Below are positions 5,701 to 59,476 of a stretch of 64,000 nucleotides of DNA, piece by piece. The notes under the pieces were generated by a model that searched no databases, was not told the origin of the DNA, and saw only the letters and a program-made list of their open reading frames with translations. This stretch comes from Hydrolagus colliei (taxonomy: Eukaryota), in NCBI GenBank assembly GCA_035084275.1, contig CM068756.1:14198001-14262000 (forward strand), read 5' to 3'. Both the position numbers and the translations under genes were made by a program. Positions within the stretch are counted from its first letter, which is position 1, and the number at the start of each line of letters is the position of its first letter.

Positions 5701-5753
5701 TCACTCTGGAAAGGCGTCTGAAAGCGCTTGGCACGGTTGGTTGGCCACGGTAG
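5701..5753 (-). CDS. A1 putative terminal exon (A)TVANQPCQALSDAFPE*
   Basis: Strong acceptor ctcgtcttccgtctccag, in phase, locally GC-rich; alternative acceptors exist. Confidence 0.45.
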
Positions 5754-8700
5754 CTGGAGACGGAAGACGAGCCATCACATATGACTGTCTGATTTTATTT
5801 GTCTCTAACAGGGTATTAATTTATTCTCACACAAAATATTTACAGCTTGTATCTTCACTGTAAATATTTTCAATTTACCTTCAAGAATGTTCAGCCTCGT
5901 GGATGTAGAGCTTATTAACAGGGATATTAATGTCAACATTTATTATGATAACCCAGTAACAGTTTGGGAAGCTATCAGATGAACATATTGTTCACTAGTG
6001 TTCCAGACACCTGGAGGTTTGGAGGAGATATTTTTATATCCATTGATTATTAGAGAATCCTCCAATAAAACAAAGTGTAATTCCCACAATCTAAACTGTC
6101 TGCTCCCAGTTGCCGGCGAAACCGGCGTTTTCCTGTTGATTGATAATTTTATGGGCGACGCTATCAATACAATAATTGTCAATGAAATCACAATATTATT
6201 TTGAAGCGAAGAATGTCTTACCTTTCAAGTTGTGAGATTTTACATGGTCAACAATGAAGATGGTCAACACTATCACTACCAAGAAACAGAATATAAACCG
6301 TAAAATCATCATATTCTCCGACATTCCACCATAACCTAGAAAAGAAATATCGGAATTAAAATCTACTGAATAATTCTACTGTATTGGGAACATGTACAGT
6401 TTGTGAATTAATTTCTATTGGAAGGTACAATGAAGTGGACGAATATTATGAATTTGTGTGATTGAAAACAACAGAGAATTGTCAGGAACATGAACGCACA
6501 GACATGCTTTAGTGATGTTACAGAGACACACATATATTATGGGGTAGCCATTCCCCTGAGTCTGTGTGCTCAGCTTCAAATACACCGGAGAGAATGACTG
6601 TTCCGACCCGAGCCTTGGAGAGTTGGGCACCATTATAATCAAAACTGATTCCATTAGACATCTACTATCAAATAGAAAAGTCTGTAACACATCTCACAAA
6701 CTATTTAGATTTTAATCGCAGCGAGTGTTGCTATAAAGGGAAAAGAAGCAGAAGATTTTCCCCAACAAAGCCTCAGAATATTGAATATATTGATAAATGA
6801 TGTTATTTGTGCTTTATTTGTGAAAATGTATCAGTGGAAAAGTCCAGTTACTGGTTTCACCCCTAATTGCTGGTGGAGAGTGCAGGTCTATAGCACTTTG
6901 GGTGGGTTACCAAATAACAAGAAAATACATTTTGAAGGAGAGAGATATTTAGAAATTAATGAGAAAACAAGAAGATACACAGGTTTGAGATATTGCTTCG
7001 TTTCAAAGACTAAACATTTATAAAAACGCAATGTATGGCAGCTGCTGGAAATCTGAAAGAATCTGAAGATTCAGCAGGTCAGGCAGCCTCTCTGGACAAA
7101 GGAAAAGTGATTCAATGTTTTGGATTCACGACCTTTCGTCTGAACTGCGTTAATAACATTTTGACTGCGTTAATAACTCCGGAAAAGAGATCTGTGATTG
7201 ACTAACAACTGGGTTCCCACTTATTGCTGGGTAAACAGACGCCCAATGTTTCGTCCTGCCCGGGAATCAAATCCAGGTCCCCCCTCGAGAGAGGCGAGTG
7301 CTCTAATCACTGAGATACACGACTCCACTGATACAGGAGATTCTGATGAATAATAATCCTAAAAGTAGCCAATTTTCCACACACAGTCATGGCGTTAATA
7401 ACCAATTTCACCTGCTGTGTTTATCAGCCAGAACAAAGGGAGGAAGAATCTTACTTCACTTTTTGAATAGTACCATGGCCTCATTAACCTGAACAAGCCA
7501 CAAGGACCTCACTTCAATGTCCCATCCCAATAGCAGGAAGCCACAGACTGCTCCCCCAGCATTACACTTGATTGCCAGTGATTTGGGACAATATTGATCC
7601 ATGTGTTCGGAATAGATTAGTATATTAGACAGCGTAAACATTCTGCTTATGGTGCTATGGAGGGTTATAAATATTTGAAAGCCTTGTTAATTTTAGACAT
7701 TTATGCATATAACATATGAATACTATTTCATTGTTAAGCAAAGTAACCAATGTAAATATTGCATCTAATCTCAATCTGTGCCTTTTTTGTGATCAAAATT
7801 ACATCTGTAAAGCACATTTCACGATTAGATGGAACTCAGAACTGAATACAGCTGGATATGTATTAGTTTACGGCAGCTGTAGCTAATGACATCTGGTTAC
7901 CATTGCTCTTGACTTTATTACTCAGGCGAGGGCGACACACAGAATACCAAAATGGACCATTGCTTATCAGAGGAACCCTCACAAAATACAATCCATAGAT
8001 TGTAGAGCAAGAGACTGCTGTACCTATTGACAGCTGATCACAGCGATGAAACACAATCACTAGTTGTTAATAAAAGGGGGAACATGACGGGATGGGAAGA
8101 TGTTTGATGCTGAAGTGTCCTGAGGTGTCCCGAGCGTTTGAAAACTATGCGGGTTCAGGATGCCACCACTTATTGGTTAGGTTTATCAAAATGTTTGATT
8201 TATTCACTTAAAATGTTCCACATTCAAACAGTATAATGTATTTTATCACCATTTCGTACAATCTCCTGATCACCTTTCTCCTATTTGTCTCCTATCAACT
8301 CTGGCATCGCTTCCTATCCCTGCAGGTCTCCCGGGAGAGAGAGCAAGTCACATTCCATCCCTCAAGTCACAGGCAGGAGCTGCCAAACATTGACTTGTCC
8401 CTCGGCCTCTCTTCTTCACTGTCTGTAAGATCCCACTTGGCGACATTATCCGCAGAGTATGTCCACATGTATATACACGAACTCTCCCATGTTCCTCCAC
8501 ACTGAACATCCACCATTAACCCAATTAGTGCCAAACTTCAAGTCCTTTCTTGAGCTCTGACTTCCTTCAGCTGAATAATAATAATCTCTGGATTTCATAT
8601 AACACCTTATATATCGAGTAAAATTATGAAATTTGGTGCTATTATTATCATCTCATTATTGTCGTCTCAAATCACTTCAGACAGTTAATTGAAAGGCGCT

Positions 8701-11700
8701 ATACAAATGTAACTCAAAATCACCAGAAATGTGACCATACCTGCAGCACGTCCACCCCATAGTGAATAACGGGTTGGATTTTCAATCCCTGGAGAAATAG
8801 TACAAAACTGAGATGAGACTGTACATTGTGTAGGGGAATGCTTTGTATATTCGGTAGAATAGATATATTATGCAAGTCATTTATGATTTATACCTTGCAG
8901 TGATTTCGAGTAAGTATTAAGCACGGTAAATGGTTTAAATATGGTCTAATCTTAATCCGTGTTTATTGAAAGCTGAATAAAAATTACAAGCAGACCATCA
9001 TTGAAAACATTTTGATATTGACGTAGGGTGTTAGACAGGTGTTAGACAGATCAACATTTGTTCTCGCTTATTTTTATTATTGCTCTTAAATCGATCACAC
9101 TGAGGGAGACACTCAGAATACACATGAAGCGGAACATCGATTTTCAGAGGAACCCTCCCAAAATACAATCTATAAATTATAGAGTGAGACAACTGGACAT
9201 AGTGGCATCTGATCGCAGCGATGAAACATGCTGACTAGCTTTGAATAAAAGGAGGAACATGGTGGGATGGAAAGACATTTGATGAATCACGTGACCTGAG
9301 CTGAAGCTGAGGTTTTGAAAATCATTCAGTTTTACGATGTGTTGATAATATCTATAATCGATAAGTAGATAATATCGGTTTGGTTTAATGAAATGTTTGA
9401 TGATTCACATCAAATGTTCCACATTCCAACAGTGTAATGTATTTGATCAACATCTTGCACAACCCCCTCATCACTAATCTCAACACATTTGTCTCCTATC
9501 AACTCTGGCATCGCTTCCTATCCCCACAGGTCTCCCGGGAGAGCAAGTCACATTCCATCCCTCAAGTCACGGGCAGGAGCTGCTGAACATTGACTGTTCC
9601 TCGGGTCTCTATCCTCAGCCTCTGCCCTTCACTATCTAGATGTTCCCACTTGGCGACAAATCGCTTCAGAGGATTCAATGAAAGGCGTTGTACAAATACA
9701 ACTTTGTTGTTGATGTTGTTTACGAATCAATGCGGCTAAACATCCCTATGAGAATTGAATTAACAACAGTTGGGTTTTTAAAACTCTTTTAGAATCTTAC
9801 CTGCTTTAGGTTTTGAGATGGTGTAGGTGGCAATAGCTGAATTCTTGAGGGTGATGTGAGACACCAGACAGGTATAAACAGATACGCTCTGGACAGACTG
9901 TGTGTCTTCAATAGAGCTAGAGACCTTATAGAGTTCCCATGAGTTCTGCTTTTCTGTGGTTCCTGTCTCTTCCACCTTTATTCCTGATGTTGGTGTAATT
10001 TCATTCCCACCTTTATACCATATGAGGGTGAAATCCTTTGGGTAAAACGCAGTAGTTTCACACACAATTGTCCGATGCTTAGTTGAATTCCTAGAAAAAA
10101 TCCTCAGTGGAGTTGGGGGAACTGTAGAACAGATAATGGAGGAAAATCATATTAATTTTGATCAATCAGCGGGAGAAACTTTATTTTAATTCATTTCTTT
10201 GCAATCTCTCGATTCCTGAGTGCAAATGGAGGTTTCTTTAGATTCACAAATATCCCTCTCACAGCAGCAGAAGCTTCCTCCTGCTGTAATTACCCTTCGG
10301 TTTTTATCAATTAATGTTGATTCGTAATCGTTGTCTTGCATATTATTACTATTATTGTGACTAAGATTATTTGGCGGAATTGATCGCTGCAAACTCTCGA
10401 TCAGAGGAGACAGAGGATTCCTGACAGGTGTGAGAACACTGTGTTATTCTGGCTGAATTGGTAGCATTCTCGCATCTGAGTTAGAAGGATATGGGATCAA
10501 ACTTGACATCGGGACTTGGAATTCACACAGTCGATGTGGAAACATTTGCTGCAATGCCGTTCTTAGGGTGAGAAATTAAATATGGTTTAATTCAACCGGT
10601 TATGTTGAACATTAAAGATCTCATGGCAATATTCAAAAACAATTTCTCTGACAGCCTACCCTTCAAAGTTAAAAACATGACCATCCACCTCATGGCTGTT
10701 GTGGGACATTGCTGTGAATAATTTGGTGGCTGTGTTTTCTCATAAAGTACCTTGTCTCATCGTTTTCCAAAATTTGTGATGCTTTGGGAGGTTTCAGTGG
10801 CATGACAAGGTGCTGGAGCAAATGAAAGGATTGTATTATCTCAGCATTGAGAGATTTTGATCAGGTAAAGAGGGAAACAGTGAGTCTGTAACAAAAGTCC
10901 ATAAGTTAGAATCATTACCATGGAATAAAGGAAAGGTTGAATTGTGATGTTACTGAGAGGCGCTTGGGTCCAAAACAAAATAATGGCTGAAGCAGAATCC
11001 ATAAAGCTGTTAAAATGAATTTTACAGCCATTTCCTTTGTCTTCTACACAGATTTTGGATTATGTATTTGAATAATATGGATTGATTTTGCATGTAACCT
11101 TTGTAACATTAGAAGTTTGTGAAATTATTTGTTAATTGTTGTACGATTAGAGTTGCATTATTTTATGTTTCAGTTGGATAGGGGTTATTTTTAATGTAAT
11201 TTTCAAATATTTTCACTCTTCATCCACACTCACCGCACACAGTTAAGCTTGATCCAGGTCCTGTTCCAATTACTGATCCCTGATGGATCACTGAGCAGCG
11301 ATAGACTCCAGAGTCCTGGAAACTCACATTGAGGATCTGGAAGAAGCCGCTCCCTTTGCCTTTCACACCAAATGTTTTCCTGCTGTCCGCCTGTGTGTCC
11401 AAGTAGCCATCCTCACCCTCCTTCTCCCACTTCACCTCCTCTCCTGAACCATCTTGAGAGAAGGGAAAAATACAGCGGAAAGTGACGTTTGTCCCTCTGA
11501 TGGCAGCCACACGTTTGGGGATTTGTGTCACTTTCTCTGTAGAATCGCCAGCAACTGTCAGAAAATAAATTCAAAAGATTGATTTCACAGATAATATGCC
11601 GTGGACAAAAGCAAGCGAGTGAATAGACTAAAAAGTAAGTATATATGATAAATGGCACAAGGAAACAAGCTTGCAGATATTTCATAGAAGAACTGAGTTG

Positions 11701-11768
11701 TAGAATAATAAAATACCTGTTGAAATAATATGTAAGACGGACAGATACAGAAACACAACACTCCCCAT
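5701..11768 (-). CDS. Gene A1: leader-VJ-C1-(stalk)-Arg-TM-short tail, candidate activating receptor; 3' exon joining inferred
   Basis: Leader, V and C1 exons are intact paralogs of B1. The B-type TM exon is truncated. An in-phase Arg-bearing TM exon lies at 6335-6222. Confidence 0.72.
6222..6335 (-). CDS. A1 Arg-containing TM exon (G)YGGMSENMMILRFIFCFLVVIVLTIFIVDHVKSHNLK
   Basis: tttcttttctag acceptor, AAAG|GTAAGA donor, phase 1/1, 114 nt. Confidence 0.82.
8685..8788 (-). CDS. A1 truncated B-type TM exon (GIENPTRYSLWGGRAAGMVTFLVIL+SYICIAPFN*), or 48-nt stalk exon 8788-8741 via a new CAG|GTATGG donor
   Basis: Same acceptor as B1 exon 4. Homology stops after FLVI; the last 9 codons come from an antisense L2/SINE-tail sequence. 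Confidence 0.7.
9801..10121 (-). CDS. A1 C1-set exon
   Basis: 321 nt, FYPKDF..W, YTCLVSH, GT-AG. Confidence 0.95.
11234..11554 (-). CDS. A1 VJ-type V exon, ends SSLTVC
   Basis: 321 nt, Cys/Trp/DSGVYRC/GTGPGSSLTV motifs, GT-AG. Confidence 0.95.
11717..11768 (-). CDS. A1 signal-peptide exon MGSVVFLYLSVLHIIST
   Basis: 52 nt, phase-1 donor, paralog of B1 exon 1. Confidence 0.88.
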
Positions 11769-11829
11769 GTCTGAATCTGGTTGTGATGAGCTGTAACACA
11801 CAAACGTGGAGTATTTGATATAGAGTAGG

Positions 11830-11886
11830 CAGCTGTGACACTGACTTCCTGTTTCTTTGGGTTCCTGAAATGTGGCTGGTGTGGTT
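11830..11886 (-). promoter_or_regulatory. Putative proximal promoter of A1: RUNX (AACCACA, AGCCACA), ETS (ACAGGAAGT), E-box (CAGCTG)
   Basis: Motif cluster 60-120 nt upstream of the ATG, conserved in A1, A2 and B1; the ETS core is also kept in the V pseudogenes. Confidence 0.55.
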
Positions 11887-14800
11887 GATGTGATTTGAAA
11901 TCCACTTCCACAATAAATTGTAAAAATACTGATTCTTCCTATTAATAGCAGAGAAAGGTTAAACAAATATGTAAACATAAAACAATAGCGTTCAGCATGA
12001 CTATCGAGTCAGTGGTGCTTTCTCCAACCTGAAATGTTGTTTTAAACATGAAATCCTGTATCTTGGGCAAGCTTCCTTACTACACATGCCTAATAATAAT
12101 CCGTCCAAAAAAAATACTATAACAAATATTGGTCATTTTCAATCCACGACTGTTTGTGGGACACTGCTGTGCGCAATTGGCTGCTGCGTTTCTCCCACAA
12201 AGATTGAGTCAATTCACTTTACAGTATATTCTGTGAAGCGCTTTTAGATGTCGATAAGATGTGAAAAGCGCTTTGTGAAATGTGCAAGGATTATTATTGT
12301 AACTCCGCCTGCAGTCAATAGTGTCAGAAACAAGCCGAACTGGTGGAATATTTCTGCTGCTAGCTCTCTCTGTCCCTTATTGATAGAAATTAACCTTTCT
12401 CTCTAAAGCGCCCACCCACCCTTTATGATACCACCTTACCATCCCATTTTAACATTACTGTTCGTATCCAACATCCTGGCCACTCAACATTGCTCCCATC
12501 TGTTTCCCCACTAAGCCCTAGAAATCCAGTTTGTACCCATCCTGGTCCACCATCGTTACTTGACGACTTCTCTTCCCTCTCCCATCTCTACGATGTACTG
12601 CAGAGTATCCAAGAACTGTATTCTTGACCCCCTTCTTTTTTCACCCCACACGCCAAATAATTAACCATCCCACCAAAAGCTGCAGTTGGTCATTGAAATG
12701 CACGACTGTTTGTGGGACATTGTTGTGCGCAATTGGCTGCCGTGTTACAACCACAAATGTATAGTCAATTCATTTTACTGTATATTCTGTGAAGCGCTTT
12801 GAGACATCCAGAAGACATGGAAAGTGCAATGATTATTATTGCACTCTCTCTCTTTGTGATACTATCCACAGACCAGCAATTAACTTTCACATTGATGTGA
12901 ACGAAAGACAACTCAACTCAACCCCACTGTTGATTCAGGATCTATTTCATTGTCAAGACCTAGATGACCCCAGACTTCCTCTAAATTACTATTGATGAAT
13001 CCCATCCTCCTTGTCTTTTGCAAATATTTCCTTTCTCCTGGAATATACTGTAAAGTGAATTGACTGTATATATGTGGGTGAAACGAGGCATCCAATTGCG
13101 CACATCAAGTGTTCCCACAAACAGTCATGGATTGAAATGACAAATTTATTATTTTTGTGTTTTTGAGGGACCATTATTAGAAGTGTGGAGCAAGGAAACT
13201 TAATCAAGGTTTCACCCTTTACAGTATATAAGGCAATATTTTGCACCACTCATACAAAGTATCAACTATATTAGGCAACTCAGAACAACAACTTGTTCAG
13301 TATTAAAAAAAAATCCTAGTGCAGGAAGAGGGAAAACATAAAATGTGAAACACAAAAATAAATGCTACTTGATATTTGATAAGCTTCTTCAGCGCTTTTT
13401 CTACCCGCAACCAGAATGGAATGTAGAACTTCATTCGAGAAGAACGGCCCGAGAATGCCATGAAGTCACTGCGCAATCACAAGGACCAGGTAGATGCCCA
13501 GTTCATCAAAACAGAGATTTAAAAGATGGCACCTCACTGCATATAGACTCAAAATCTACATGCAACTCCAATATTGTTGGTCAGTCAATGGAAATTAAAT
13601 TTTTTAGTTGTGATCTATCCTTGCCACCCAATTTATTATTTTTATTAAGCTCCTCGAGCACGTCCATTCATGGGAGAACAAAGCTTGTTGTCCTCCTCAA
13701 ACCAAACCGAAGGGATAGAGTAACAATAACATCACTGAGCAGGACCAGGATATTATTGTAAAGGAAAAGTCCAAGCATAGAACTCTAAATGACCTAGATT
13801 TACAGACCCAATTAAATTTGCAGGTAACATCAATTGATAGATAAACCAATGGGATGCACTAAGAGGAAACACAAATCTCCACAAATCCTCCACCCAAACA
13901 GGGTGTTGTGTTATTTGTGGCACTATATAAATATATTCAGAGTCCTGTAGCTCAGTAGTTAGAGCACTTGCCTTACAAGTGAGTGACCTGAGTATCCTTA
14001 CTCCACACATCTAATAATAATCGCTCAAAACAATAATAAATTGACCATTTCAATCCATGACAGTTTGTCGGACACTGTTGTGGGCAATTGGTTGCTGCAT
14101 TTTGCCCAAATAGATACAGTCAGTTCACTTTGCTGTATAATCTATGAAGTGCTTTGAGACGTCTAGAAGATTTAAGAAGCACCATATCAAATGCAAAGAT
14201 AATTATTATTATTTTCATTATTACATTACTCTGGTCAGACGGCACCTTGAATAATGTAATCACTGCGACATAACGGGGCTTCCCAATGCAGTGGAAAACA
14301 ATGAGGATGATGCCCCCATTAGGGGAATATGCCATGAGAGGTGTTTAAAATTGTAAATTGGATTGAAAAAGTCACCCCAGATTAATAGTTTAAGTTGTAG
14401 TAAAACGGCAGAATAAGAGGACATAGGTTTTGAGTTGCAAGGGCAATATCAGAATAGATAGCAGAATAGATTTCTTCACAGAACTAAAATAAGAATAGCT
14501 GGAATAGTTTGGGAGGAAGTTTGGCTGAGGCCACATCAAACACACACAGCTACAACACCACCTCATGCAGTAGGAATGCTGCCGTTCCATAAGAAATGCA
14601 ATATTGTGCCCAGTTTTTACAGCCATTTTGCTACAATAGCCACCTTGATGGAAACATTAATAATCCATGCTCTATCTATAATCTGAGAGCATGAGACTCT
14701 TGCAGTGGAATTTGACGTTTATAAATGCAGCAGAACGATTGGGGTTTTAACTCTTATTTGTTTCATGTTGGGTACATTGTTAGTAGATATACAAAATGCT

Positions 14801-15052
14801 CAATGCTGACACTTCAACTTTTTCACTGTAGTTGACGAACTGCACCACATTTTGTTGCCTCCACCCTCTCTGTTTGTGCTTGAAATCCTCGCCATCCAAA
14901 TAAGCCCCAGTTCAGTGTCATCAGAAGTGAAACATATTTATGTTTTGGAGGGTTAGACTTTATATTCTAGACATTTTGCACAAAACATTCATCAAGGTTC
15001 TGCTCACAAATTGACCTTGATGTTGATATTAGCATTGGGAATGGTTATTGTA

Positions 15053-16267
15053 TCTTCCTGGACCTGTCCGCTGCGTTTGACACAGTCGACCACACCATCC
15101 TCCTCCACCGTCTGTCCTCCGTCATCCACCTCAGTGGGACCGCACTCGCCAGGTTCGAGTCCTACCTCACAAACCGCCAGCAGTACATCTCCACAAATGT
15201 CTTTTCCTCCCGATCTCACACAGTTACCTGTGGGGTACCCCAGGGATCCATCCTTGGCCCCCTCCTTTTCCTCATCTACATGCTCCCTCTTGGGAATGTC
15301 ATCCACAGACATGGGACACACTTCCACATGTACGCGGATGACACCCAACTCTATTTCTCCACCTCACTTTGTGACCCCCAGACCCCTGATGTACTGTCCG
15401 CCTGCCTGTCAGAATCAGGAGCTGGATGAGCTCAAATTTCGTGCAGCTGAATGTTGACAAGATGGAAGCTACACTCTTTGGCTCTCGTCAATGTCTCCAT
15501 TCAGGTGTCTCTCACCTCCTCCACTTTCCCGGTCTCTCCCTGACATTCTCCGAACCTGTGCGCAACCTTGGAGTCAGGTTCGATCCCCAACTGTCCTTCC
15601 TCCCCCACATCAGTTCCCTCACCAGCACCGCCTTCTTCCACCTCTGACGGATCGCCCGTCTCCAGCAATACCTCACCCCAAAAGCCGCTGAAACCCTGGT
15701 CCATGCCTTCGTCACCTCACGGCTGGACTATTCAAATGCCCTCCTCGCCAGTCTCCCCTCCACCACAATCCATAAAATACCACTCATCCAAAACTCTGCA
15801 GCCCACACCAAACTTCGCTCCCCCATTACCCCAGTCCTTATGAGACTTCACTGGCTCCCTATCCCCGAGAGGATCGACTTCAAGATCCTCACCCTTGTTT
15901 TCAAATCCCTCTACTCTTCAGCACCCCCCTACCTCTCTGACATCCTCTCTCCTCAACCCAGCACCCGCTGCCTTCACTCTACCATGTCTAGCCTCCTCCA
16001 TGTCCCCCCAAATCCTCCGCTCCACCCTCAGCAGCCAGGCCTTCAGCCACTATGCCCCAAGGCTCTGGAATTCCCTTCCTCACTACCTTCGTCTCGCCCA
16101 CTCTTTTCTCAGTTTCAGGTCCCAGCTGAAGACCTTTGTCTTCGACCGCGCCTTTGGTCACCTTCCTGCCCCTGCCCCTGGCTCGGTCCCGGGATCCGCT
16201 GTTGTGAAGCGCTCTGAGACGCCATCTGGCGTGGAGGGCGCCATATAAATCAAAGTTGTTGTTGTTG
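15053..16267 (+). mobile_element. 5'-truncated L2 LINE (duplicate at 49267-50481)
   Basis: [29 protein letters not shown]; GGCGCCATATAAAT..(TTG)n tail; empty site in the type C paralog at ~3106. Confidence 0.92.
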
Positions 16268-46100: not shown

Positions 46101-49100
46101 GATGTGATTTGAAATCCACTTCCACAATAAATTGTAAAAATACTGATTCTTCCTATTAATAGCAGAGAAAGGTTAAACAAATATGTAAACATAAAACAAT
46201 AGCGTTCAGCATGACTATCGAGTTAGTGGTGCTTTCTCCAACCTCAAATGTTGTTTTAAACATGAAATCCTGTATCTTGGGCAAGCTTCCTTACTACACA
46301 TGCCTAATAATAATCCGTCCAAAAAAAATACTATAACAAATATTGGTCATTTTCAATCCACGACTGTTTGTGGGACACTGCTGTGTGCAATTGGCTGCTG
46401 CGTTTCTCCCACAAAGATTGAGTCAATTCACTTTACAGTATATTCTGTGAAGCGCTTTTAGATGTCGATAAGATGTGAAAAGCGCTTTGTGAAATGTGCA
46501 AGGATTATTATTGTAACTCCGCCTGCAGTCAATAGTGTCAGAGACAAGCCGAACTGGTGGAATATTTCTGCTGCTAGCTCTCTCTGTCCCTTATTGATAG
46601 AAATTAACCTTTCTCTCTAAAGCGCCCACCCACCCTTTATGATACCACATTACCATCCCATTTTAACATTACTGTTCGTATCCAACATCCCGGCCACTCA
46701 ACATTGCTCCCATCTGTTTCTCCACTAAGCCCTAGAAATCCAGTTTCTACCCATCCTGGTCCACCATCGTTACTTGACGACTTCTCTTCCCTCTCCCATC
46801 TCTACGATGTACTGCAGAGTATCCAAGAACTGTATTCTTGACCCCCTTCTTTTTTCACCCCACACGCCAAATAATTAACCATCCCACCAAAAGCTGCAGT
46901 TGGTCATTGAAATGCACGACTGTTTGTGGGACATTGTTGTGCGCAATTGGCTGCCGTGTTACAACCACAAATGTATAGTCAATTCATTTTACTGTATATT
47001 CTGTGAAGCGCTTTGAGACATCCAGAAGACATGGAAAGTGCAATGATTATTATTGCACTCTCTCTCTTTGTGATACTATCCACAGACCAGCAATTAACTT
47101 TCACATTGATGTGAACGAAAGACAACTCAACTCAACCCCACTGTTGATTCAGGATCTATTTCATTGTCAAGACCTAGATGACCCCAGACTTCCTCTAAAT
47201 TACTATTGATGAATCCCATCCTCCTTGTCTTTTGCAAATATTTCCTTTCTCCTGGAATATACTGTAAAGTGAATTGACTGTATATATGTGGGTGAAACGA
47301 GGCATCCAATTGCGCACATCAAGTGTTCCCACAAACAGTCATGGATTGAAATGACAAATTTATTATTTTTGTGTTTTTGAGGGACCATTATTAGAAGTGT
47401 GGAGCAAGGAAACTTAATCAAGGTTTCACCCTTTACAGTATATAAGGCAATATTTTGCACCACTCATACAAAGTATCAACTATATTAGGCAACTCAGAAC
47501 AACAACTTGTTCAGTATTAAAAAAAATTCCTAGTGCAGGAAGAGGGAAAACATAAAATGTGAAACACAAAAATAAATGCTACTTGATATTTGATAAGCTT
47601 CTTCAGCGCTTTTTCTACCCGCAACCAGAATGGAATGTAGAACTTCATTCGAGAAGAACGGCCCGAGAATGCCATGAAGTCACTGCGCAATCACAAGGAC
47701 CAGGTAGATGCCCAGTTCATCAAAACAGAGATTTAAAAGATGGCACCTCACTGCATATAGACTCAAAATCTACATGCAACTCCAATATTGTTGGTCAGTC
47801 AATGGAAATTAAATTTTTTAGTTGTGATCTATCCTTGCCACCCAATTTATTATTTTTATTAAGCTCCTCGAGCACGTCCATTCATGGGAGAACAAAGCTT
47901 GTCGTCCTCCTCAAACCAAACCGAAGGGATAGAGTAACAATAACATCACTGAGCAGGACCAGGATATTATTGTAAAGGAAAAGTCCAAGCATAGAACTCT
48001 AAATGACCTAGATTTACAGACCCAATTAAATTTGCAGGTAACATCAATTGATAGATAAACCAATGGGATGCACTAAGAGGAAACACAAATCTCCACAAAT
48101 CCTCCACCCAAACAGGGTGTTGTGTTATTTGTGGCACTATATAAATATATTCAGAGTCCTGTAGCTCAGTAGTTAGAGCACTTGCCTTACAAGTGAGTGA
48201 CCTGAGTATCCTTACTCCACACATCTAATAATAATCGCTCAAAACAATAATAAATTGGCCGTATCAATCAATGACAGTTTGTCGGACACTGTTGTGTGCA
48301 ATTGGCTGCTGCATTTTGCCCAAAGAGATACAGTCAGTTCACTTTGCTGTATAATCTATGAAGTGCTTTGAGACGTCTAGAAGATTTAAGAAGCGCCATA
48401 TCAAATGCAAAGATAATTATTATTATTTTCATTGTTACATTACTCTGGTCAGACGGCACCTTGAGTAATGTAATCACTGCGACATAACGGGGCTTCCCAA
48501 TGCAGTGGAAAACAATGAGGATGATGCCCCCATTAGGGGAATATGCCATGAGAGGTGTTTAAAATTGTAAATTGGATTGAAAAAGTCACCCCAGATTAAT
48601 AGTTTAGGTTGTAGTAAAACGGCAGAATAAGAGGAAATAGGTTTTGAGTTGCAAGGGCAATATCAGAATATTTAGCAGAATAGATTTCTTCACAGAACTA
48701 AAATAAGAATAGCTGGAATAGTTTGGGAGGAAGTTTGGCTGAGGCCACATCAAACACACACAGCTACAACACCACCTCATGCAGTAAGAATGCTGCCGTT
48801 CCATAAGAAATGCAATATTGTGCCCAGTTTTTACAGCCATTTTGCTACAATAGGCACCTTGATGGAAACATTAATAATCCATGCTCTATCTATAATCTGA
48901 GAGCATGAGACTCTTGCAGTGGAATTTGACATTTATAAATGCAGCAGAACGATTGGGGTTTTAACTCTTATTTGTTTCATGTTGGGTACATTGTTAGTAG
49001 ATATACAAAATGCTCAATGCCGACACTTCAACTTTTTCACTGCATTTGACGAACTGCACCACATTTTGTTGCCTCCACCCTCTCTGTTTGTGCTTGAAAT

Positions 49101-50481
49101 CCTCGCCATCCAAATATGCCCCAGTTCAGTGTCATCAGAAGTGAAACATATTTATGTTTTGGAAGGTTAGACTTTATATTCTAGACGTTTTGCACAAAAC
49201 ATTCATCAAGGTTCTGCTCACAAATTGACCTTGATGTTGATATTAGCATTGGGAATGGTTATTGTATCTTCCTGGACCTGTCCGCTGCGTTTGACACAGT
49301 CGACCACACCATCCTCCTCCACCGTCTGTCCTCCGTCATCCACCTCAGTGGGACCGCACTCGCCAGGTTCGAGTCCTACCTCACAAACCGCCAGCAGTAC
49401 ATCTCCACAAATGTCTTTTCCTCCCGATCTCACACAGTTACCTGTGGGGTACCCCAGGGATCCATCCTTGGCCCCCTCCTCTTCCTCATCTACATGCTCC
49501 CTCTTGGGGATGTCATCTACAGACATGGGACACACTTCCACATGTACGCGGATGACACCCAACTCTATTTCTCCACCTCACTTTGTGACCCCCAGACCCC
49601 TGATGTACTGTCCGCCTGCCTGTCAGAATCAGGAGCTGGATGAGCTCAAATTTCGTGCAGCTGAATGTTGACAAGATGGAAGCTACACTCTTTGGCTCTC
49701 GTCAATGTCTCCATTCAGGTGTCTCTCACCTCCTCCACTTTCCCGGTCTCCCCCTGACACTCTCCGAACCTGTGCGCAACCTTGGAGTCAGGTTCGATCC
49801 CCAACTGTCCTTCCTCCCCCACATCAGTTCCCTCACCAGCACCGCCTTCTTCCACCTCTGACGGATCGCCCGTCTCCAGCAATACCTCACCCCAAAAGCC
49901 GCTGAAACTCTGGTCCATGCCTTCGTCACCTCACTGCTGGACTATTCAAATGCCCTCCTCGCCGGTCTCCCCTCCACCACAATCCATAAAATACAACTCA
50001 TCCAAAACTCTGCAGCCCACACCAAACTTTGCTCCCCCATTACCCCAGTCCTTACCAGACTTCATTGGCTCCCTATCCCCGAGAGGATCGACTTGAAGAT
50101 CCTCACCCTTGTTTTCAAATCCCTCTACTCCTCTGCACCCCCCTACCTCTGTGACCTCCTCTCTCCTCAACCCAGCACCCGCTGCCTTCGCTCTACCAGG
50201 TCTGGCCTCCTCCATGTCCCCCCAAATCCTCCGCTCCACCCTCAGCAGCCAGGCCTTCAGCCACTATGCCCCAAGGCTCTGGAATTCCCTTCCTCACTAC
50301 CTTCGCCTCGCCCACTCTTTTCTCAGCTTCAGATCCCAGCTGAAGACCTTTCTCTTCGACCGCGCCTTTGGTCACCTTCCTGCCCCTGCCCCTGGCTCGG
50401 TCCCGGGATCCGCTGTTGTGAAGCGCTCTGAGACGCCATCTGGCGTGGAGGGCGCCATATAAATCAAAGTTGTTGTTGTTG

Positions 50482-51710
50482 TAATGTAGCCCTGGATTGA
50501 GCAATAGGCCACTAACTTGCCATTTAAGGCTGATCAATGGTAAGCACTAGGGTCCGGTGATATATCGATATATCGCTAAAACCCGATATAATTTTCATAT
50601 CGATACGCCGATATAGGCATTTCAAAAATATGGATATATCGAAAAATCAATATATCGAAGTAAAAAATCAGAATGCGCGCACACTGAACTACAAGACCCA
50701 GAATGCTCATCTCTATACACAATGCACAGACCGAGGTGCAAAGCCGCCATATTGTATTCATAGTCCTCGAATATAATATACAGGTATGGAAGGGTTGGGG
50801 GGGGGGGGGGGGGGGGAGGGGAGAGAGACAGCTGGGGGGGGGGGAGAGAGACGGCTGGGGGGGGGGAGGGGGAGTGAGACGGCTGGGGTGGGGGAGGGGA
50901 GAGAGACGGCTGGTGGGGGCGTGGAGGGAGAGAAAGACGGCGGCGGGGGGGGAGGAGGAGAAAGACGGCTGGGGGGGCGGGGGGGAGAGTGTGGGAGAGA
51001 GGGATGGCGGCGGGGGGCGGGAGGAGAGAGGGACGGCAGCGGTGTGGGTGGTGGGGGGAGAGACGGGGTGGATGTGATAATATACAGATAGATAGAGATT
51101 GGGGGGATGTGAGAGAGGAGAGAGACACAGAGACACAGACAGAAAAACACAGAGATGGAGAGAGTGGGTGTGAGAGACACAGAGAGAGAAAGATATTTAC
51201 CTCCTGAGGAGATAGGCCTGAATGCGCGCGCACCCCGATTGCGCTGCGCACGCATGCGCAGTACGAAAACCCCAAAATTATCGATATTTCAGTATATCTC
51301 GATATGAGCCCGTCGATGTATCTAAATCGGAAAATTTCCATATCGACGGACCCTAGTAAGCACATGAGCAACCAAGAAAGTTGAATTGGAGAAAAGAAGA
51401 AGCAGGGGTTATTTTCTAGGTGTTTTCCGAATCACTAAGGATATAAATAAACTGTCAGCAAATAATATGTTTGATGAAGGAAAGGAATAATGCAGTGGAA
51501 ATTGATGTTTATCCCTCTAATAACAATCATACATTCTGCTCGTAGTGTTACTTTGACTGAAAAATTACCAGTAACTAACAGAAAAAAGGTGCAGATTGTT
51601 CCAGTAAAATAACATCCCCCTCCCATGAATCTGATCAGTTTTGACTCTGATAACAACGCTGCACAAATGTGTAGCCACTTTACATGTTTCTGTGTCTTTG
51701 ACTTCCTGTC
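50482..51710 (-). pseudogene. V pseudogene type D, copy 2
   Basis: Duplicate of copy 1 with the same insertions. Confidence 0.72.
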
Positions 51711-54700
51711 TTGGAGGTTTTCAGGAAATTGAATTCATGTTGTGAGCGTAATTCGTAATTACATGTAATCATTAAAGCTACGTCAACCTTCTGAATCAGA
51801 AGTGAGAGGGCGACCAAATGAGCCAGCCTGATACGCAATGCATGATTCATGTTGCAGTCATCTGCAGCCTGGAAGTTCTTTGTTTCCTTGAACAGGTTTG
51901 TTTCACACAGAATGATCAATACCATTTATTAACTTCAAGTGAACCCATGATTACATTTGTACAATTGTGGCAATATATTCAGCCGATCAGTTGATGCCAA
52001 TAACTACAGTAGGGAAGCCAGTAGCTTGAAAACCAGATTCTTGATCGTAAAATTAGGAGACAAAATATGTCCCAGATTATAATTTTCACTGAGAGCTGTA
52101 AACATGGTACAATTTGTCAAATAATGTGGTAAATGTGGGTAAAACAAGGCAGCGAATTGCGCACAACAATTTCCCACAAATAGTCATTGGTTGAATGCAT
52201 ATCTATAGAATGTTAAGTCTCAATCATTTAGTCTAATTATTTTCCTATGTGCCATTCACACACAGAGTGAATAAATATTCCAGATACATTGCAATAATAT
52301 ATTGTTGCTACCATACAGAGGTATAATTTAATTTTTAATGACTGTTGGTATGTAGCTTGCAGTATCAGGACTAAATGTTGCTTTACTTTACCACCGCTGA
52401 ATACTTACTGGTACAAATGTGGAAGTGTAAGTGATGTGGGTGTCTGTCACACAGTAACTGCTGCCTTGGGGATCAATATGAATCCTGCTCATTGTGTGTT
52501 TTCATGCAATGATTATTCCTACTTTAATCACAATGAATAGTTTGCTCAGCTGAGGTGGCATCTGAGGTACTCTATCTATCAGCGCCAGAGTATAACCATG
52601 TAACCACAATCTAAGTTCCTATTCAGCATCAAAATAAATGACTCATATGCTGTTTCATTAATCGATTCCGATTCCACCTTTTGACCACTGGGTGAATTTC
52701 TTTCTCTCGCTGAATAATTCTTGTGCTGCTTTTTAAATTTTTTTATAGTACTGTACTAATGACTGGGTACATTTGGGGGTTGGTGATTTATGGTCTAAAT
52801 AAATCAATATTGATTTAATATTGAATTGAAATATTAAACTCTAACGAAGAATAAAGCACACCGATTAATGCATAATAATAATAATCATTGCATTTGATGT
52901 GGCGCTTCTAATGTCTTCTAGATAACTCAAAATGTTTCACAGAACTCAGTGGAAAGTGAATTGAGTATGTATTTTGTGGGCGTAACGCAGCAGCCAATTG
53001 TGCACAGGAGAGTCCCACAAACTAAGGAAACTTCCCCAAAGTTTTACCCTGACCTGCTTGGAATTGAACCCTCTTGCAAGGCGAGTGCTCTAACCAATAA
53101 GCTACAGGATTCCACTATATTTAATGATAAACCCTGGAATCAGCCCTGAATTACTCTTATCCCTAGTTGCCAGCGGTTTGACAGCACAGCCCCATCAGTG
53201 GCAGCATCATTGAGGATTTACAGAGATTTACAAAGGGAACATTGGTCTGTGAAGGGCAATCACCATTTGTATCATTGAATTTGAGTCTTGATTTCAGTCT
53301 TGAGACATTGTATGCAACTGATTCAACACATCAATGTGAAAACCTTTTAGGCATCTGCCTGGAATGTGTGACAATATAAATAGGAGCACAACGATCCTGC
53401 TTAAGTGTTCATGAAATTCAATTGAATTTAAACCAGTGAATAGATACAAAAGCATGTTGATTAAACACTTTAAAGAAAAAAACAATCTTTGCTTTGATTT
53501 CATCAAATGGAAGGTTGCACTGTGACATAGAAACAGATGCAATGAGGCACATAAACTTTACTGATGGCCAACAAAAGGCTTTGTGGTGTGAGAGTGTAAC
53601 TGTGATACACACACACACATCTATATATGTAGATGGAGATATATGCGTATACGTGTGAAATTGCTACACCTAAACAGACACACGCTCCATCAGTTCATGT
53701 GTTGCATAAATGGTCTGTGAGTGTGGACAATCGTGTTCTTTATTTAATCGGGTACAGCAGAGACAAGGGTAAAAAACTAAATGTTGCTTAATTTCAGCTT
53801 AATTTAACACATACTTGCATAACGCCCACACAATAGCCTTTACATTGTGGCAGATGAATTGCATCACATTTTCTTAGATAAATGTTAAGGTTATTCACAT
53901 CAGTTTACTTCTAATTTGAGTCTCTGTTATTGTCATCCAATGAGCCAACATAATACAGAAAAGTGAAACAAAACATTACCCTCACTGCATACATTGAACT
54001 GATGTACATTTACATTTAAATTTTGTAGTCATCAAACCGTATGTTTGTTGTTGAAATTGGCTGGAAGAGAGCTGGAATCAACTAAAGGAGGCTGCTTTTT
54101 GTCCAAGAATTCAACTGATGACCAATCCTTAAAATGTTTGGATTTCCCAGAGAGAGAGAGAAACATTACTGAACCTTAAAGAATCATTATAACCAAACAC
54201 AAAATACTACAGATGCTGGAAATCTGAAACAAAAACAGAAGTTACTGGGAAAACTCAGCAGGTCGGGCAGCATCCATGGAGAAAGGAAAGTGATTCAACG
54301 TTTTGGGTCCATGACGCTTCATCAGAACTCAAACGAAGGGTCGTGGACCCAAAACGTTGACTCACTTTCCTTTCTCCATGGATGCTGCCTGACCTGCTGA
54401 GTTTTCCTAGCAACTTTTGTTTTTGTTTCAGAATCACCATAGTCTATGGCTGAAGCCCAGTAGTAAGTACTTGGCTAAGCTGTATCTGAAACAAAGCGTA
54501 AGAACTCCATTATGGTGTTTAATTTATTTTATTCAATTCTATCGTAGAGATAGATTGACCAAATCAAACCCAACACATTAGGTTCGATAAATGTTGTTTA
54601 TTTGAGATCTACAAAACCACTTCACAGTGTTAGAAACTATTAAAACTGGTCCCAGATTTGTATTGGTGTATTTTGTTCCAGTGATATAATAGCTTCATTG

Positions 54701-54960
54701 ATTTTATAAATGATTATAGTTGATAGCACAGCGACATTATCAGATTAGGATTAAACAATTTTGAAGGTGAAATTGGATCGAGTTTATAAATGATTGTTAA
54801 TAAGAATGGAATCGGGAAAAGGGAAAATGATGTATTTCTGCACTGTCAAAGCAGTGATACACTAGCAGACCAGACCAGGATTGATACACACACTGTCACT
54901 TGTCTACATTGACAGGGATCTGTGACTGACATGCAGAGGTAATTGTCTAATATTGTGACA

Positions 54961-57900
54961 TTATGCGGCTCCTGACTCCGTGACAGTGACAGCTTTGTAG
55001 TTTCCGACATTTACCTCCGCATACTCTGAATTCTTGCCGCCGGGTTTAGCTTTTCCTGTTTTTTTGGAGCGAGGGAAATCCAGATCAGCGTAGGTCAGCT
55101 TGTCAGTGGCGGCTCCTCGCTTGGTCTGAAAACAACAATGTTTGGGATTGTCTTTTTGTTGGTTCCATGTATAGATTTACATAGAATGGTACAGGAACTG
55201 AGCAGCTGCTGTTTATACTTCACATTTCCTCCATTCTTACTTATTTTCTTCTATAAATCTCTATTCTTTTCTCCTCGTCTCCGCAACAAGGTTTATGTTA
55301 TATTATTCCAAACTCATCACCCCATGGCCAATTGGTGAATGTATTTCAAACTGAGATATGTAACTGTAGATTTAAGGCTCTAGATCTTAGCGATGAGCTG
55401 ACAGCTGCTTTGGTTGGTGCAGATCAGTTAATCCTGGAATTCCCGATTGCTCTATGGGAATTTGAAATCTCAGGATGGCTGGGTCAGTATACACATGATC
55501 CTCGTTAATTTATTTGCTGAATTGTTAATTCATATCTAAAGATACAATCTTAGAATATTATGGCCCAGAAAGTAAGTTTGCTCATCGGACACGTGCTGTT
55601 AATTTGAAAGAATTATGTATAGAGTCCCATTTACCTGCCTTTTCTCCAACACTCCTTAAAATTCATCTGTTTTTACATATCCCCATTATCTTCAGATAAA
55701 GGAATTATGTTGTTTCAACGCAGAAAGGCTGAAGATATTCAAAAACCAAATGCAGAATACAAATGAGGTAGAAGATTGGAGTTGGGGACAAAATCATAAC
55801 GATCAAACCAATGAAGCCTATTTACCAAACCCGTTCAACATTTTTTACATGTTGTTTACCTGGGCGTATACTGTCCTCTCCTCCTGTTGTTTAGGTCTTG
55901 GAGTTTTATTGGAACTTTTTAAATCCAATGCTACATAAGCCACGTTGTCACCCACTGCTCCCTCCCCCGTCTGTAAAACAAAGTATAGAGTTAAATAGTT
56001 GTTCAGTTTCCTTCCTAGGTCTGTGCTCTTTGACTATGGTATTGATTAAGTAGGGATTTTAGGGGAAACAACGGCTACTGTTGAGTTCAAATATTAATGG
56101 CACATAACATCCAGTAAGTAGATCGAGATCTCTCCAGGAGCAGAGAAAATTATTGTTTCCAATTGATACTTTGCCATCCACCAATACGAAAATATGTTGC
56201 AGAACTGATTAGATGAATTCAACAAGAATTCTCACTTCAAGTATTATCTCTTAAAATATCCTGGGATTAGCCCTGTTGCTAGGCACAGGCCTGACACTGA
56301 AGGATTACTCAAAAGGTAAATTACTTGTTTATTGGAGTAACAATTTAATCCTTTAAAGGGGAATAAATAGGTCTATTTATTCCTATTAAGGAAAGGTTGA
56401 AAGCTTTGCGTTCATTGTCGAATTAAACGTAAACTCTGTCTTCTTGGGGTGGGATGAGATTATTGTCTGTCTTGTCTTAAACTCTGTCTTGTTGGGGTGG
56501 GATGGTATGCTGGCGAATGATAATCAGAATAACTTGGCGATACACTTCATCGTGGTTTATGGGACCATATTATGCGCAAATTGGTTGTAGCAAATAGAGT
56601 CGCTACAAAGGCAAGGATTAGAAGCATTTTAAGATGATTGGAATTATAGGATCCACATTGATAATGATTAAATTGCTCCATTGGTCACCCAAACTCTTTG
56701 GTGAAAAACTTATAATAGTAATAATAATCCTTGCTTTTGATATAGCGCTTTTCACATCTTCTCGGCATCTCAAAGCGCTCCATGGGAATATACTGCAAAG
56801 TGAATTGACTGTATTGCAAACAGCAGTGTCCCACAAACAGTTGTGGATTAAAATCACCAATTTTTAAAAACATACCCGTTCTTCAAGATTGCCCGATTGA
56901 GTCAGGTTTCCCTTTGATCCTAAATGTGAATAAAATTTACTGAATTAAATATTTACCCAATTTTAATGTTAACAATAAAATCATGTAATTATCCTACATT
57001 TTGGGATGAGTGAAATCCAAATATTCTCCTGCATTATTTACCCTCCACCTGAATCTGCATGTCACTCATACTTTCTTAAATCCTTAACACTGTGGGACTC
57101 TTTCCGTTGAATATTGAAAATCTGAAACTTGGCGATGGCTAACACTATTCCTCAATTCTTAAGAAACTTGGTTGTTTCCTGCAAGCTGAGCCTTGGTTTC
57201 TCTCCTGGGACTCTCAATAATAAAAATATATTTTTAATGTACCAATTTCAATGTAATACATTGCTGAATTCCGTTAAAAAATAACAAATAACATGTGTAA
57301 AGCGCCTTTCACGTCGGGAGGTTGTTTACTGATAAACATACACCTGGCGCTAATCCCTGCATTTGTTTGAGACCATTCGTCAGTACAGTTACTTACAAAT
57401 GCACATAATTCATCCAATTATAAGGCAGTTGCAATATTGTATATTGAATCAGATTTCTGACATTGGATGTTGGAAAAGGAGCAATTCTGGGAAACTAACA
57501 TTCACCTTGTGAAATTGTTCCAGGAATGAATCTGTTGTAATAACTACAAGTAATTGATGTTGTATAATCACAGCGTCACAGAACTCTACTATCATGGAAA
57601 TAAGAATCAAGTCACTTTGTCTCTTTGCTAATAACCATTGGTGCTTTCGATGGTTTTATATCAAGTTGTAATGTTTACAATTAATTGCAATGAAATCAGA
57701 ATTTTCTTACTGTTTTTCTTCTTTAATTGGCAACGCTTCCCAATTATGATGAAAATCACCAGAAATGCGACCACACCCGCAGCACATCCACCCCATAGTG
57801 AATAACGGGTTGGATTTTCAATCCCTGGAGAAATAGTATTCACTGAGGTGAGACTGTACATTGTGTAGGGGAATGCTTTATAAATTTGGTAGAATAGATA

Positions 57901-59476
57901 TGTTATGCAAGTCATTTATTATTTATACCTTGCAGTGATTTCGAGTAAGTATTAAGAACGGTAAATGGTTTAAATATGGTCTAATCTTAATCCGTGTTTA
58001 TTGAAAGAGGAATATAAATTACAAGGAGACCATCATTGAAAACATTTTGATATTGACGTAGGGTTAGACAGGTGTCAGCGCCTTGGGACGTCTTCCCGAC
58101 GTTAAAGGCGCTCTATAAATGTAAATTGTTGTTATTGTTGTTGTGTTAGACAGATCAACATTTGTTCTCCCTTATTTTTATTGTTGCTCTTAAATCGATC
58201 ACACTGAGGGCGACACTCAGAATACACATGAAGCGGAACATTGATCTTCAGAGGAACCCTCACAAAATACAATCTATAAATTATAGAGTGAGACAACTGG
58301 ACATGGTGGCATCTGATCGCAGCGATGAAACATGCTGAGTAGCTTTGAATAAAAGGAGGAACATGGTGGGATGGAAAGACATTTGATGAATCACGTGTCC
58401 TGAGCTGAAGCTGAGGTTTTGAAAATCATCCCTATGAGAATTGAATTAACAACAGTTGGGTTTTTAAAACTCTTTTAGAATCTTACCTGCTTTAGGTTTT
58501 GAGATGGTGTAGGTGGCAATAGCTGAATTCTTGAGGGTGATGTGAGACACCAGACAGGTATAAACAGATACGCTCTGGACAGACTGTGTGTCTTCAATAG
58601 AGCTAGAGACCTTACAGAGTTCCAACGAGTTCTGCTTTTCTATGGTTACTGTCTCTTCCACCTTTATTCCTGATGTTGGTGTAATTTGGTTCTCATCTTT
58701 ATACCATATGAGGGTGAAATCCTTTGGGTAAAACACAGTAGTTTCACACACAATTGTCCGATGCTTAGTTGATTTCCTAGAGAAAATCCTCAGTGGAGTT
58801 GGGGGAACTGTAGAACAGATAATGGAGGAAAATCATATTAATTTTGATCAATCAGCGGGAGAAACTTTATTTTACTTCTTTTCTATGCAATCTTCCGATT
58901 CCTGAGTGCAAATGGAGGTTTATTTAGATTCACAAATATCCCTCTCACAGCAGCAGAAGCTTCCTCCTGCTGAAATTACCCTTCGGTTTTTATCAATTAA
59001 TGTTGATGCGTAATCGTTGTCTTGCATATTATTACTATTATTGTTATTGTGACTAAGATTATCAGGCGGAATTGATCACTGTGAACTCTCGATCAGAGGA
59101 GACAGAGGATCCCTGACAGGTGTGAGAACACTGTGTTATTCTGGCTCAATTGGTAGCATTCTCGCATCTGAATTAGAAGGACATGGGATCAAACTTGACA
59201 TTGGGACTTGGAATTCACATAGTTGATGTGGAAACATTTGCTGCAATGCACACTCACCCTGCACAGTTAAACGTGATCCAGGTCCTGTTCCAATTACTGA
59301 TCCCTGACGGATCACTGAGCAGCGATAGACTCCAGAGTCCTGGAAACTCACATTCAGGAGCTGGAAGAAGCCGCTTCCTTTGCCTATCACACCAAATCTT
59401 TTCCTGCTGTCCGACTGTGTGTACAAGTAGCCGTCCTCACCCTCCTTCTCCCACTTCACCTCCTGTCCTGAACCGT
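54961..59476 (-). pseudogene. Gene B2: 5'-truncated inhibitory receptor (promoter, leader and first 34 V codons lost; all downstream exons intact)
   Basis: V remnant 59476-59258, C1 58807-58487, TM 57824-57711, cytoplasmic exons 56919-56876, 55970-55860 and 55125-54961; all four Tyr motifs preserved. Confidence 0.85.
58076..58142 (+). mobile_element. ~67-bp L2 3' tail inserted in the B2 intron only
   Basis: Nearly identical to 29221-29289; absent from the B1, A1 and A2 introns; GTGT-like TSD. Confidence 0.8.

Follow-up and report, generated by a model that had tools for sequence, protein, structure and literature searches.

The 64,000-nucleotide window of the Hydrolagus colliei assembly GCA_035084275.1 analysed here (contig CM068756.1, positions 14,198,001 to 14,262,000; all window positions below are counted from its first letter) probably belongs to a holocephalan (chimaera) cluster of several genes for paired immunoreceptors of a SIRP-like kind. 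Brake and accelerator versions of a receptor, matched to each other, lie in a duplicated cluster of this genome. The inhibitory (B-type) genes end in a tail with four Tyr motifs, and the activating (A-type) genes have a transmembrane (TM) exon with an Arg, the Arg-TM exon; one A and one B gene were found per duplication unit (Table 1). Every peptide quoted in an earlier reading of the window, made from its letters alone (the sequence-only reading), was recovered on the minus strand, twice each, with about 34 kb between the copies. A locus in Callorhinchus milii (L001; MU249845.1, 15.25-15.29 Mb) was about 80% identical to the window, introns and intergenic DNA included. The window is thus the orthologous region in another holocephalan, and the cartilaginous-fish setting proposed by that reading stood.

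B1 had been described as an intact gene of seven exons with a joined VJ exon, one C1, an uncharged TM and four Tyr motifs, and this description held when the gene was read with its splice sites. These were canonical (GT/AG), and the immunoglobulin (Ig) exons were in phase 1. The 44-nt first cytoplasmic exon (cyt1) could not be picked out by splice signals alone and was placed through the C. milii protein P0002, as ...KKKN/GSKGNLTQLGKLEDQ/AGEAAAGDNVAYVTLDL (slashes mark exon boundaries). A six-exon B1 using an alternative donor of the TM exon (..ISLQLI/GTAAAC, phase 0) was dropped, as the cyt1 mini-exon is conserved in C. milii. The B-type tail has about 110 residues and three of its four Tyr motifs (VAYVAL, LTYADL and SEYAEV) match the consensus of the immunoreceptor tyrosine-based inhibitory motif (ITIM). 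Its order is ITIM, about 23 residues, Y, 14 residues, ITIM, about 23 residues, ITIM, and this pattern was kept across holocephalans, sharks and rays. The second inhibitory copy, B2, lacks the leader and the first 35 or so V codons, because it is cut off at 59476/59477 by DNA that is homologous to the stretch downstream of A1. The neighbour at this junction is the DNA downstream of A3, and the remaining B2 exons are open.

The sequence-only reading had also placed next to B1 A-type genes with almost the same ectodomain and an Arg-bearing TM. Two such genes, A1 and A2, were complete, and the Arg-TM exon was conserved in C. milii and in sharks. In both genes this exon reads MMILRFIFCFLVVIVLTIFIVDH (core ...MMILRFIFCFLVVIVLTIFIVDHVK...) and is followed by a short last exon, with both frames open. 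The invariant Arg lies in the outer third of the TM, which has no Lys, and a short tail follows. A3 was represented in the window by its Arg-TM and last exons only, its V and C1 lying past the window end. By self-BLAST, A and B genes were homologous up to a point inside the TM exon (8714 for A1, 23801 for B1), and each A gene (A1, A2) retained, with its acceptor intact, a remnant of the 5′ part of the B-type TM exon that runs GIENPTRYSLWGG(R/C)AAGMVTFLVILSYICIAPFN to an in-frame stop. In A1 the remnant reads GIENPTRYSLWGGRAAGMVTFLVI, then diverges and meets the stop; the Arg-TM exon lies 2.4 kb beyond it. The A1 remnant also carries a Cys-to-Arg change (WGGRAAG; WGGCAAG in A2) relative to A2, B1 and B2.

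The same B-TM remnant was present in C. milii (L001 12386-12430). Two copies of the Arg-TM exon were detected there by tblastn (L001 735-827 and 15494-15607), the second of them downstream of V, C1 and the remnant, which is the same A layout. The open reading frame (ORF), the Arg and both splice sites of the exon were kept in five copies from two species. Shark RefSeq models from Heptranchias, Heterodontus, Carcharodon, Scyliorhinus and Chiloscyllium contained the motif R..L....L...II(V/F)(D/E)H. An exhaustive profile search characterised the shark TM type as an Arg (once Gln, in P0067), about 17 hydrophobic residues and I(I/V)(V/F/M)(D/E)H, and found the Arg-TM type behind V-C1 in Heptranchias (P0022, P0096), Heterodontus (P0044), Carcharodon (P0059), Scyliorhinus (P0062) and Chiloscyllium (P0073). 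Given the exon in C. milii and the TM type in sharks, the activating form is an ancient and conserved partner and no chance ORF. The split between A and B is likewise judged to be old, since the breakpoint and the Arg-TM exon are common to Callorhinchus and the TM type is common to sharks. A word-index search with the A-type C-terminus gave no matches; this was a false negative of the method, since the existing homologues share no exact 5-mers with that C-terminus.

Each gene encodes a signal peptide, a V that includes its own J motif and a single C1-set domain, so that the ectodomain resembles an Ig light chain. V-set and C1-set domains were found by Pfam (C1-set E~1e-10), and AlphaFold, run on the family alignment, predicted the V-C1 ectodomain with confidence (block pLDDT about 85-91), the TM as a helix and the tail as disordered. 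V is a single 321-nt exon that extends from the A strand through GTGPGSRLTV, a fit to the J motif GxG(T/S)xLxV, with a GT donor immediately after. The 300 bp around each V exon contained no heptamer-spacer-nonamer resembling a recombination signal sequence (RSS); the one RSS-like match in the whole window was within the shuffle range. As V and J are contiguous in one exon with no RSS nearby, the genes are germline-joined and non-rearranging, with a single C1, as the earlier reading had it. On the same evidence (V and J contiguous, RSS absent within 300 bp) a rearranging Ig light chain or T-cell receptor (TCR) chain was rejected.

Two further features of the ectodomain were observed. The A-type V exons (3′ ends 11234 and 45448) close with a Cys (..SSLTVC/VPP), as does that of the C. 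milii A-type gene, while neighbouring B-type V exons (e.g. 3′ end 25637) close with Q or R; a Cys was found in some B-type members of other species. This Cys at the A-type V 3′ end could be an inter-chain disulfide site. The C1 exon copies at 10121-9801, 25228-24908, 44461-44141 and 58807-58487 differed by about 4% of nucleotides, the duplication background being about 2%. Their amino-acid changes were concentrated at residues ~37-65, with a ratio of nonsynonymous to synonymous change (dN/dS) of 0.4-1.5. This divergence could mean that the C domain, and not the V domain, is under diversifying selection or undergoes gene conversion in patches.

Within a species the A and B ectodomains were very similar. 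In the window they differed at 3.7-4.4% of nucleotides in the C1 exons and about 12% in the V exons, and in a neighbouring C. milii gene pair at 3.5% and 9.3%. Expressed as distances, A and B were 0.035-0.044 apart in C1 and 0.09-0.13 apart in V within a species; between species the values were 0.16-0.21. Arg forms paired with ITIM forms inside subclades of the ectodomain tree, with 98-100% support (window A1+B1, 100/99; C. milii g1+g2, 100/98; P0044+P0038, 100/99; P0059+P0010, 98/91). Because the type-specific 3′ ends are common across species while the ectodomains pair within species, the ectodomains must have undergone homogenisation by gene conversion, and this within-species homogenisation is the classic paired-receptor signature.

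The closest proteins were C. milii RefSeq models (67% identity), followed by models from Heptranchias, Heterodontus and Mobula. Their names conflict: PTPNS1-like, SIRP beta-1-like, tapasin-related-like, Ig lambda-1-like and CD276 homolog. Elsewhere in the family the labels NCR3LG1-like (“NCR3 ligand 1-like”) and MHC class II beta-like were found. The 10 kb on either side of two C. milii genes contained family members only, at both loci. One C. milii model, the 489-aa “PTPNS1-like” P0001 (L001 10001-29291), was a read-through fusion of two neighbouring genes. It consisted of an A-type V-C1 and a B-type V, partial C1 and tail, and skipped the Arg-TM exon at L001 15494-15607.

The evidence for a relationship to SIRP came mostly from the tail. 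BLASTP against human SIRPα aligned C1, TM and tail collinearly (E=1e-11), with the four Tyr motifs in register. The tail alone scored 104 against the SIRPα tail by Smith-Waterman, compared with 29±5 for shuffled sequences (z=14; none of 2000 shuffles reached 104), so the SIRPα-like four-Tyr tail of the sequence-only reading was supported. The human SIRPα query was corroborated by a near-identical bat SIRPα from the database (P0123). Tyr spacings were 23/14/23 in the B tail and 24/17/26 in SIRPα, and the motifs paired as VAYVAL/ITYADL, TVYAQT/TEYASI, LTYADL/LTYADL and SEYAEV/SEYASV (B tail/SIRPα). A family profile built from database homologues was searched against 1.84 billion representatives. 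Its compact top matches were chondrichthyan in every case looked up, and the best compact match outside this group was a bat SIRPα (E=3.6e-41), in one stretch over C1, TM and tail; the other best matches outside it were PTPNS1-like in a lungfish and SIRP-like in a frog and a skink. With the full ectodomain, the best sequence match in the PDB was human SIRPα (2wng, E=2.5e-11; phmmer), above IgM and light chains.

Table 1. Features of the window, with positions in nucleotides from its first letter
Feature	Position	Strand	Basis
Tandem segmental duplication, two units	240..59249	.	self-BLAST, reverse-transcriptase-like ORFs
A1, activating-type gene, 286 aa	5701..11768	-	sequence reading
A1 leader	11768-11717	-	sequence reading
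A1 VJ	11554-11234	-	sequence reading
A1 C1	10121-9801	-	sequence reading
A1 B-type TM exon remnant	8718..8789	-	tblastn, four-way alignment, self-BLAST boundary
A1 Arg-TM exon	6335-6222	-	conserved in C. milii L001 and shark RefSeq models
A1 last exon	5753-5701	-	sequence reading
B1, intact inhibitory-type gene, 7 exons, 375 aa	21012..26183	-	sequence reading, GT/AG sites
B1 leader	26183-26132	-	sequence reading
B1 VJ exon	25957-25637	-	sequence reading
B1 C1 exon	25228-24908	-	sequence reading
B1 TM exon, uncharged	23875-23762	-	sequence reading
B1 cyt1	22972-22929	-	homology to C. milii P0002
B1 cyt2, VAYVALDL..TVYAQ	22024-21914	-	sequence reading
B1 cyt3, LTYADLDF..SEYAEV, stop	21176-21012	-	sequence reading
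A2, second complete activating-type gene, 286 aa, spliced ORF open	40046..45982	-	tblastn, spliced reading
A2 leader	45982-45931	-	
A2 VJ	45768-45448	-	
A2 C1	44461-44141	-	
A2 B-TM remnant	43130-43059	-	
A2 Arg-TM exon	40676-40563	-	
A2 last exon	40098-40046	-	
B2, inhibitory-type copy, 5′-truncated	54961..59476	-	self-BLAST, tblastn, spliced reading
B2 partial V	59476-59258	-	tblastn
B2 C1	58807-58487	-	tblastn
B2 TM	57824-57711	-	tblastn
B2 cyt1	56919-56876	-	tblastn
B2 cyt2	55970-55860	-	tblastn
B2 cyt3	55125-54961	-	tblastn
A3, 3′ part of third activating-type gene	61427..62115	-	tblastn, spliced reading
A3 Arg-TM exon, in-frame 18-bp insertion	62115-61983	-	
A3 last exon	61523-61427	-	

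Several results weigh against parts of this account, and those that concern the A-type genes raise the question of whether these genes make an Arg-bearing receptor at all. Splicing from C1 to the Arg-TM exon, with the B-TM remnant skipped, is predicted from orthologous gene models. Compared with A3 and the two C. milii copies, the Arg-TM exon of A1 and A2 has lost 1 bp towards its 3′ end, just before the donor, and because of this deletion their last exon is read in another frame (both frames are open); A3 retains the ancestral phase 1-to-2 exon end, as in C. milii. On the 26-codon Arg-TM core dN/dS was uninformative (pN ~ pS, Nei-Gojobori), the replacements being hydrophobic throughout. C1 might instead be spliced into the B-TM remnant, whose acceptor is identical to that of the B genes and whose ORF ends ...FLVILSYICIAPFN and a stop. 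The product would then be a tail-less membrane form, a decoy or a target of nonsense-mediated decay, and the Arg-TM exon a relic in H. colliei; the deletion, the lack of any annotated protein sharing exact words with the A C-terminus, and the omission of the exon from the RefSeq models of the C. milii locus all agree with this. We nevertheless consider it distinctly unlikely, given the five Arg-TM copies with ORF, Arg and splice sites kept in two species and the shark RefSeq models in which C1 is joined directly to the homologous TM. Moreover, the deletion lies after the TM and leaves the frame open, and the 18-bp insertion of A3 is in frame. It is still less probable that the second unit (A2, B2 and the A3 junction) was made by the assembly, for example from haplotypes or collapsed repeats set in tandem, which would leave fewer true genes. 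The units are indeed about 98% identical across 25 kb, and the junction at 59476/59477 is abrupt and cuts the B2 V exon. However, indels and clustered amino-acid changes distinguish the copies, several tandem copies lie within about 40 kb in C. milii too, and the window has no runs of N.

A set of results goes against a specific link between the ectodomain and SIRP. The family profile scored UrIg2 at 106 bits (structure 9dmx), the SIRPα ectodomain at 93 bits and Fab light chains at about 80 bits, and with the C1 profile the C domains of Ig and UrIg2 matched equally well. A C1-only profile searched against the PDB was dominated by the summed scores of multi-domain Ig heavy chains, by which SIRP, Ig and UrIg cannot be ranked per domain. 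The V alone gave weak, generic matches in the PDB, with no SIRP and no NKp30 among the top 60; Ig lambda V was the best among single V domains, and identity to the SIRPα V was about 25%. All of the top 50 Foldseek matches were Fab light chains, so the rank of SIRPα was uninformative. The ectodomain tree left the placement of SIRPα, on a very long branch, unsettled (about 3.6 substitutions per site for the branches of SIRPα and the frog SIRP-like protein). The invariant TVYAQT, second of the Tyr motifs, fits neither the canonical ITIM nor the immunoreceptor tyrosine-based switch motif (ITSM). V and C1 thus appear generically Ig-light-chain-like and not specifically SIRP-like, and SIRP orthology therefore has the tail as its main support. 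With the tail by itself as query, a word-index search returned two C. milii proteins only; because of the short query and E-values set by the database size, this was uninformative on SIRPα. The family could on these grounds be no relative of SIRP and instead a non-rearranging V-C1 lineage of independent origin that resembles light chains or UrIg, a relic from near the antigen-receptor stem, with a tail that is convergent or was gained by exon shuffling, the tail being encoded on separate exons. We regard this as unlikely, though less so than the two gene-level alternatives above. Convergence over a collinear tail of about 100 residues with matching Tyr spacing would be hard, SIRPα proteins were the best compact matches outside the group and continuous through C1, TM and tail, and an ITIM tail is absent from UrIg and UrIg2, whose C domains number 3-11 (PMC12227049). 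An identity of the genes with the NKp30 (NCR3) or B7H6 type is the least credible of all and was rejected. The likeness had been drawn from a gap-free match of the G-strand J motif and from the TM Arg, and some RefSeq labels in the family do read “NCR3 ligand 1-like”. BLASTP of A1 against NKp30 gave 28 bits over V only, with the TMs unaligned. NKp30 has no C1 domain, its absence from the top 60 V matches was noted above, and the shared motif is the generic GxG(T/S)xLxV J motif that occurs in SIRPα and Ig too. A bolder reading is held tentatively, at somewhat short of an even chance: the family would be the cartilaginous-fish co-orthologue of the tetrapod SIRPs, and the four-Tyr tail, the A/B pairing and the VJ plus one-C1 architecture would have been present in the jawed-vertebrate ancestor. 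If so, the second C1 and the CD47-binding V of tetrapod SIRPs were later additions.

The duplication unit was about 34.3 kb long, and 240-25555 paired with 34552-59249 at 97-98% identity (self-BLAST). A third, partial unit was detected as a pairing of 3713-7486 with 59477-63256 at 94%. A1/B1, A2/B2 (truncated) and A3 would have arisen by recent tandem duplication and unequal crossing-over. The units were separated by a spacer (26500-34500) rich in transposable elements and of higher GC (0.48). ORFs similar to reverse transcriptases of transposable elements were found on both strands, at 14957-16245, 27490-29244, about 30000-31700 and 49171-50459. On the minus strand, long CT-rich low-complexity stretches at 16411-17184 and 50579-51431 were open in several frames, as ORFs of 160-270 codons rich in Pro and Ser; they resemble simple repeats rather than genes. 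A V-like fragment that covers the A-B strand region (e.g. VTGNFSVEITRSPDCLMATRGTNITFHCI) was also found in four copies on the minus strand, at 3391-3287, 17328-17224, 37733-37629 and 51575-51471. These copies were 40-48% identical to the V exon, each lay 2-4 kb 3′ of the last exon of some gene, and C. milii had counterparts at equal relative places (L001 7600-7740 and 19251-19323). An older V exon may have left these fragments behind, or they may represent an exon so far unrecognised.

SHP-1 and SHP-2 bind phosphorylated ITIMs, and adaptors with an immunoreceptor tyrosine-based activation motif (ITAM) pair with a basic TM residue, as in SIRPα/β, KIR, LILR and NKp46. By analogy, ligand binding and phosphorylation of the B tail by Src kinases would recruit SHP-1 or SHP-2 and so dampen the cell. 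In the A-type genes, where the 3′ end is replaced by the Arg-TM exon and a short tail, the receptor would signal only through an ITAM adaptor with an acidic TM, for which the FcRγ/CD3ζ type or DAP12 are candidates. The position of the Arg resembles that of FcRγ-coupled receptors more closely than the mid-TM Lys of DAP12-coupled SIRPβ1. Both parts of the earlier proposal, SHP recruitment by one form and FcRγ/CD3ζ coupling by the other, are putative. As their ectodomains are kept alike by gene conversion, the A and B forms would be expected to see the same or similar ligands.

The novelty claimed by the sequence-only reading was overstated. The genes as such are not new, because homologues have already been predicted in many chondrichthyan RefSeq annotations, where they are automatically named “SIRP-like”, “tapasin-related-like” or “Ig lambda-like”. 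A literature search nevertheless found no paper describing the chondrichthyan V-C1 paired-receptor family. The SIRP family has been dated to Tetrapoda (PMC13262535), and its evolutionary origins have been called unknown (PMC9652883). The match of the B tail to human SIRPα suggests a receptor type older than land vertebrates, and a SIRPα-type tail with a conserved Arg-TM partner across cartilaginous fishes would push the origin of this receptor of the checkpoint type to the base of the jawed vertebrates. The relevance to the Ig/TCR ancestor that had been proposed was a less original point, since the VJ-C1 idea is established and UrIg and UrIg2 are now the leading, and stronger, precursor candidates (PMC12227049, PMC10751288). 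In practical terms, the automatic annotations of the family are inconsistent, and the Arg-TM exon is passed over in at least one model, a fusion of neighbouring genes.

In its minimal form an antigen-receptor chain is VJ plus one C1, as in these ectodomains, and the family is therefore a further non-rearranging VJ-C1 lineage to set beside UrIg, UrIg2, PRARP and NKp30. PRARP, reportedly described by Fu et al. in 2019 (J Immunol; cited in PMC10751288), is a pair of non-rearranging VJ-C1 genes that occurs in bony fish, amphibians, reptiles and birds; no protein of that name was present among the profile matches whose names were looked up. UrIg and UrIg2 are non-rearranging VJ-C genes of elasmobranchs (PMC12227049, PMC10751288). 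Like the genes of the window, they belong to cartilaginous fish and have C1-type domains behind a germline-joined VJ exon, and they too have been auto-annotated as Ig light chain-like. They differ in having 3 to 11 C domains, no ITIM tail and no Arg-TM partner (PMC12227049), and, unlike this multigene cluster of paired receptors, were reported as single genes with linkage to the MHC or the Ig/TCR complex. Membership of UrIg/UrIg2 was rejected, as the genes here have one C1 exon and a tail with ITIMs.

KIR, LILR/PIR, the teleost NITR and LITR, and, for the Arg-TM type, NKp46/NKp30 are similar in setting an ITIM tail against a basic TM residue behind near-identical ectodomains. Further shared traits are clustering in tandem, gene conversion and copies that are gained and lost rapidly (birth and death). 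Unlike the VJ plus C1 found here, the ectodomains of all these systems are C2/I-set or V only, and none of them has the SIRPα-type four-Tyr tail.

The SIRPs share several features with the family. Their N-terminal V has a J motif on one exon and is followed by C1-set domains, the inhibitory member has four tail Tyr in the same order and with similar spacing, the activating partner has a basic TM residue and a short tail, and the genes are clustered with paired ectodomains kept alike. In contrast to the two C1 domains of mammalian SIRPα/β/γ, only one is found here, and the second Tyr motif lacks the +3 Ile. CD47 binding should not be assumed, because the V is not specifically similar to that of the SIRPs. 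An outer-third Arg and an IVDH boundary mark the activating TM, where SIRPβ1 has a mid-membrane Lys; the TM of a bat SIRPβ-like protein (P0166) reads LSFKVLLVVGVSAIYV. This difference points to a different or additional adaptor from that of SIRPβ1, and the A-type TM is functionally analogous to the SIRPβ1 TM, not the same TM.

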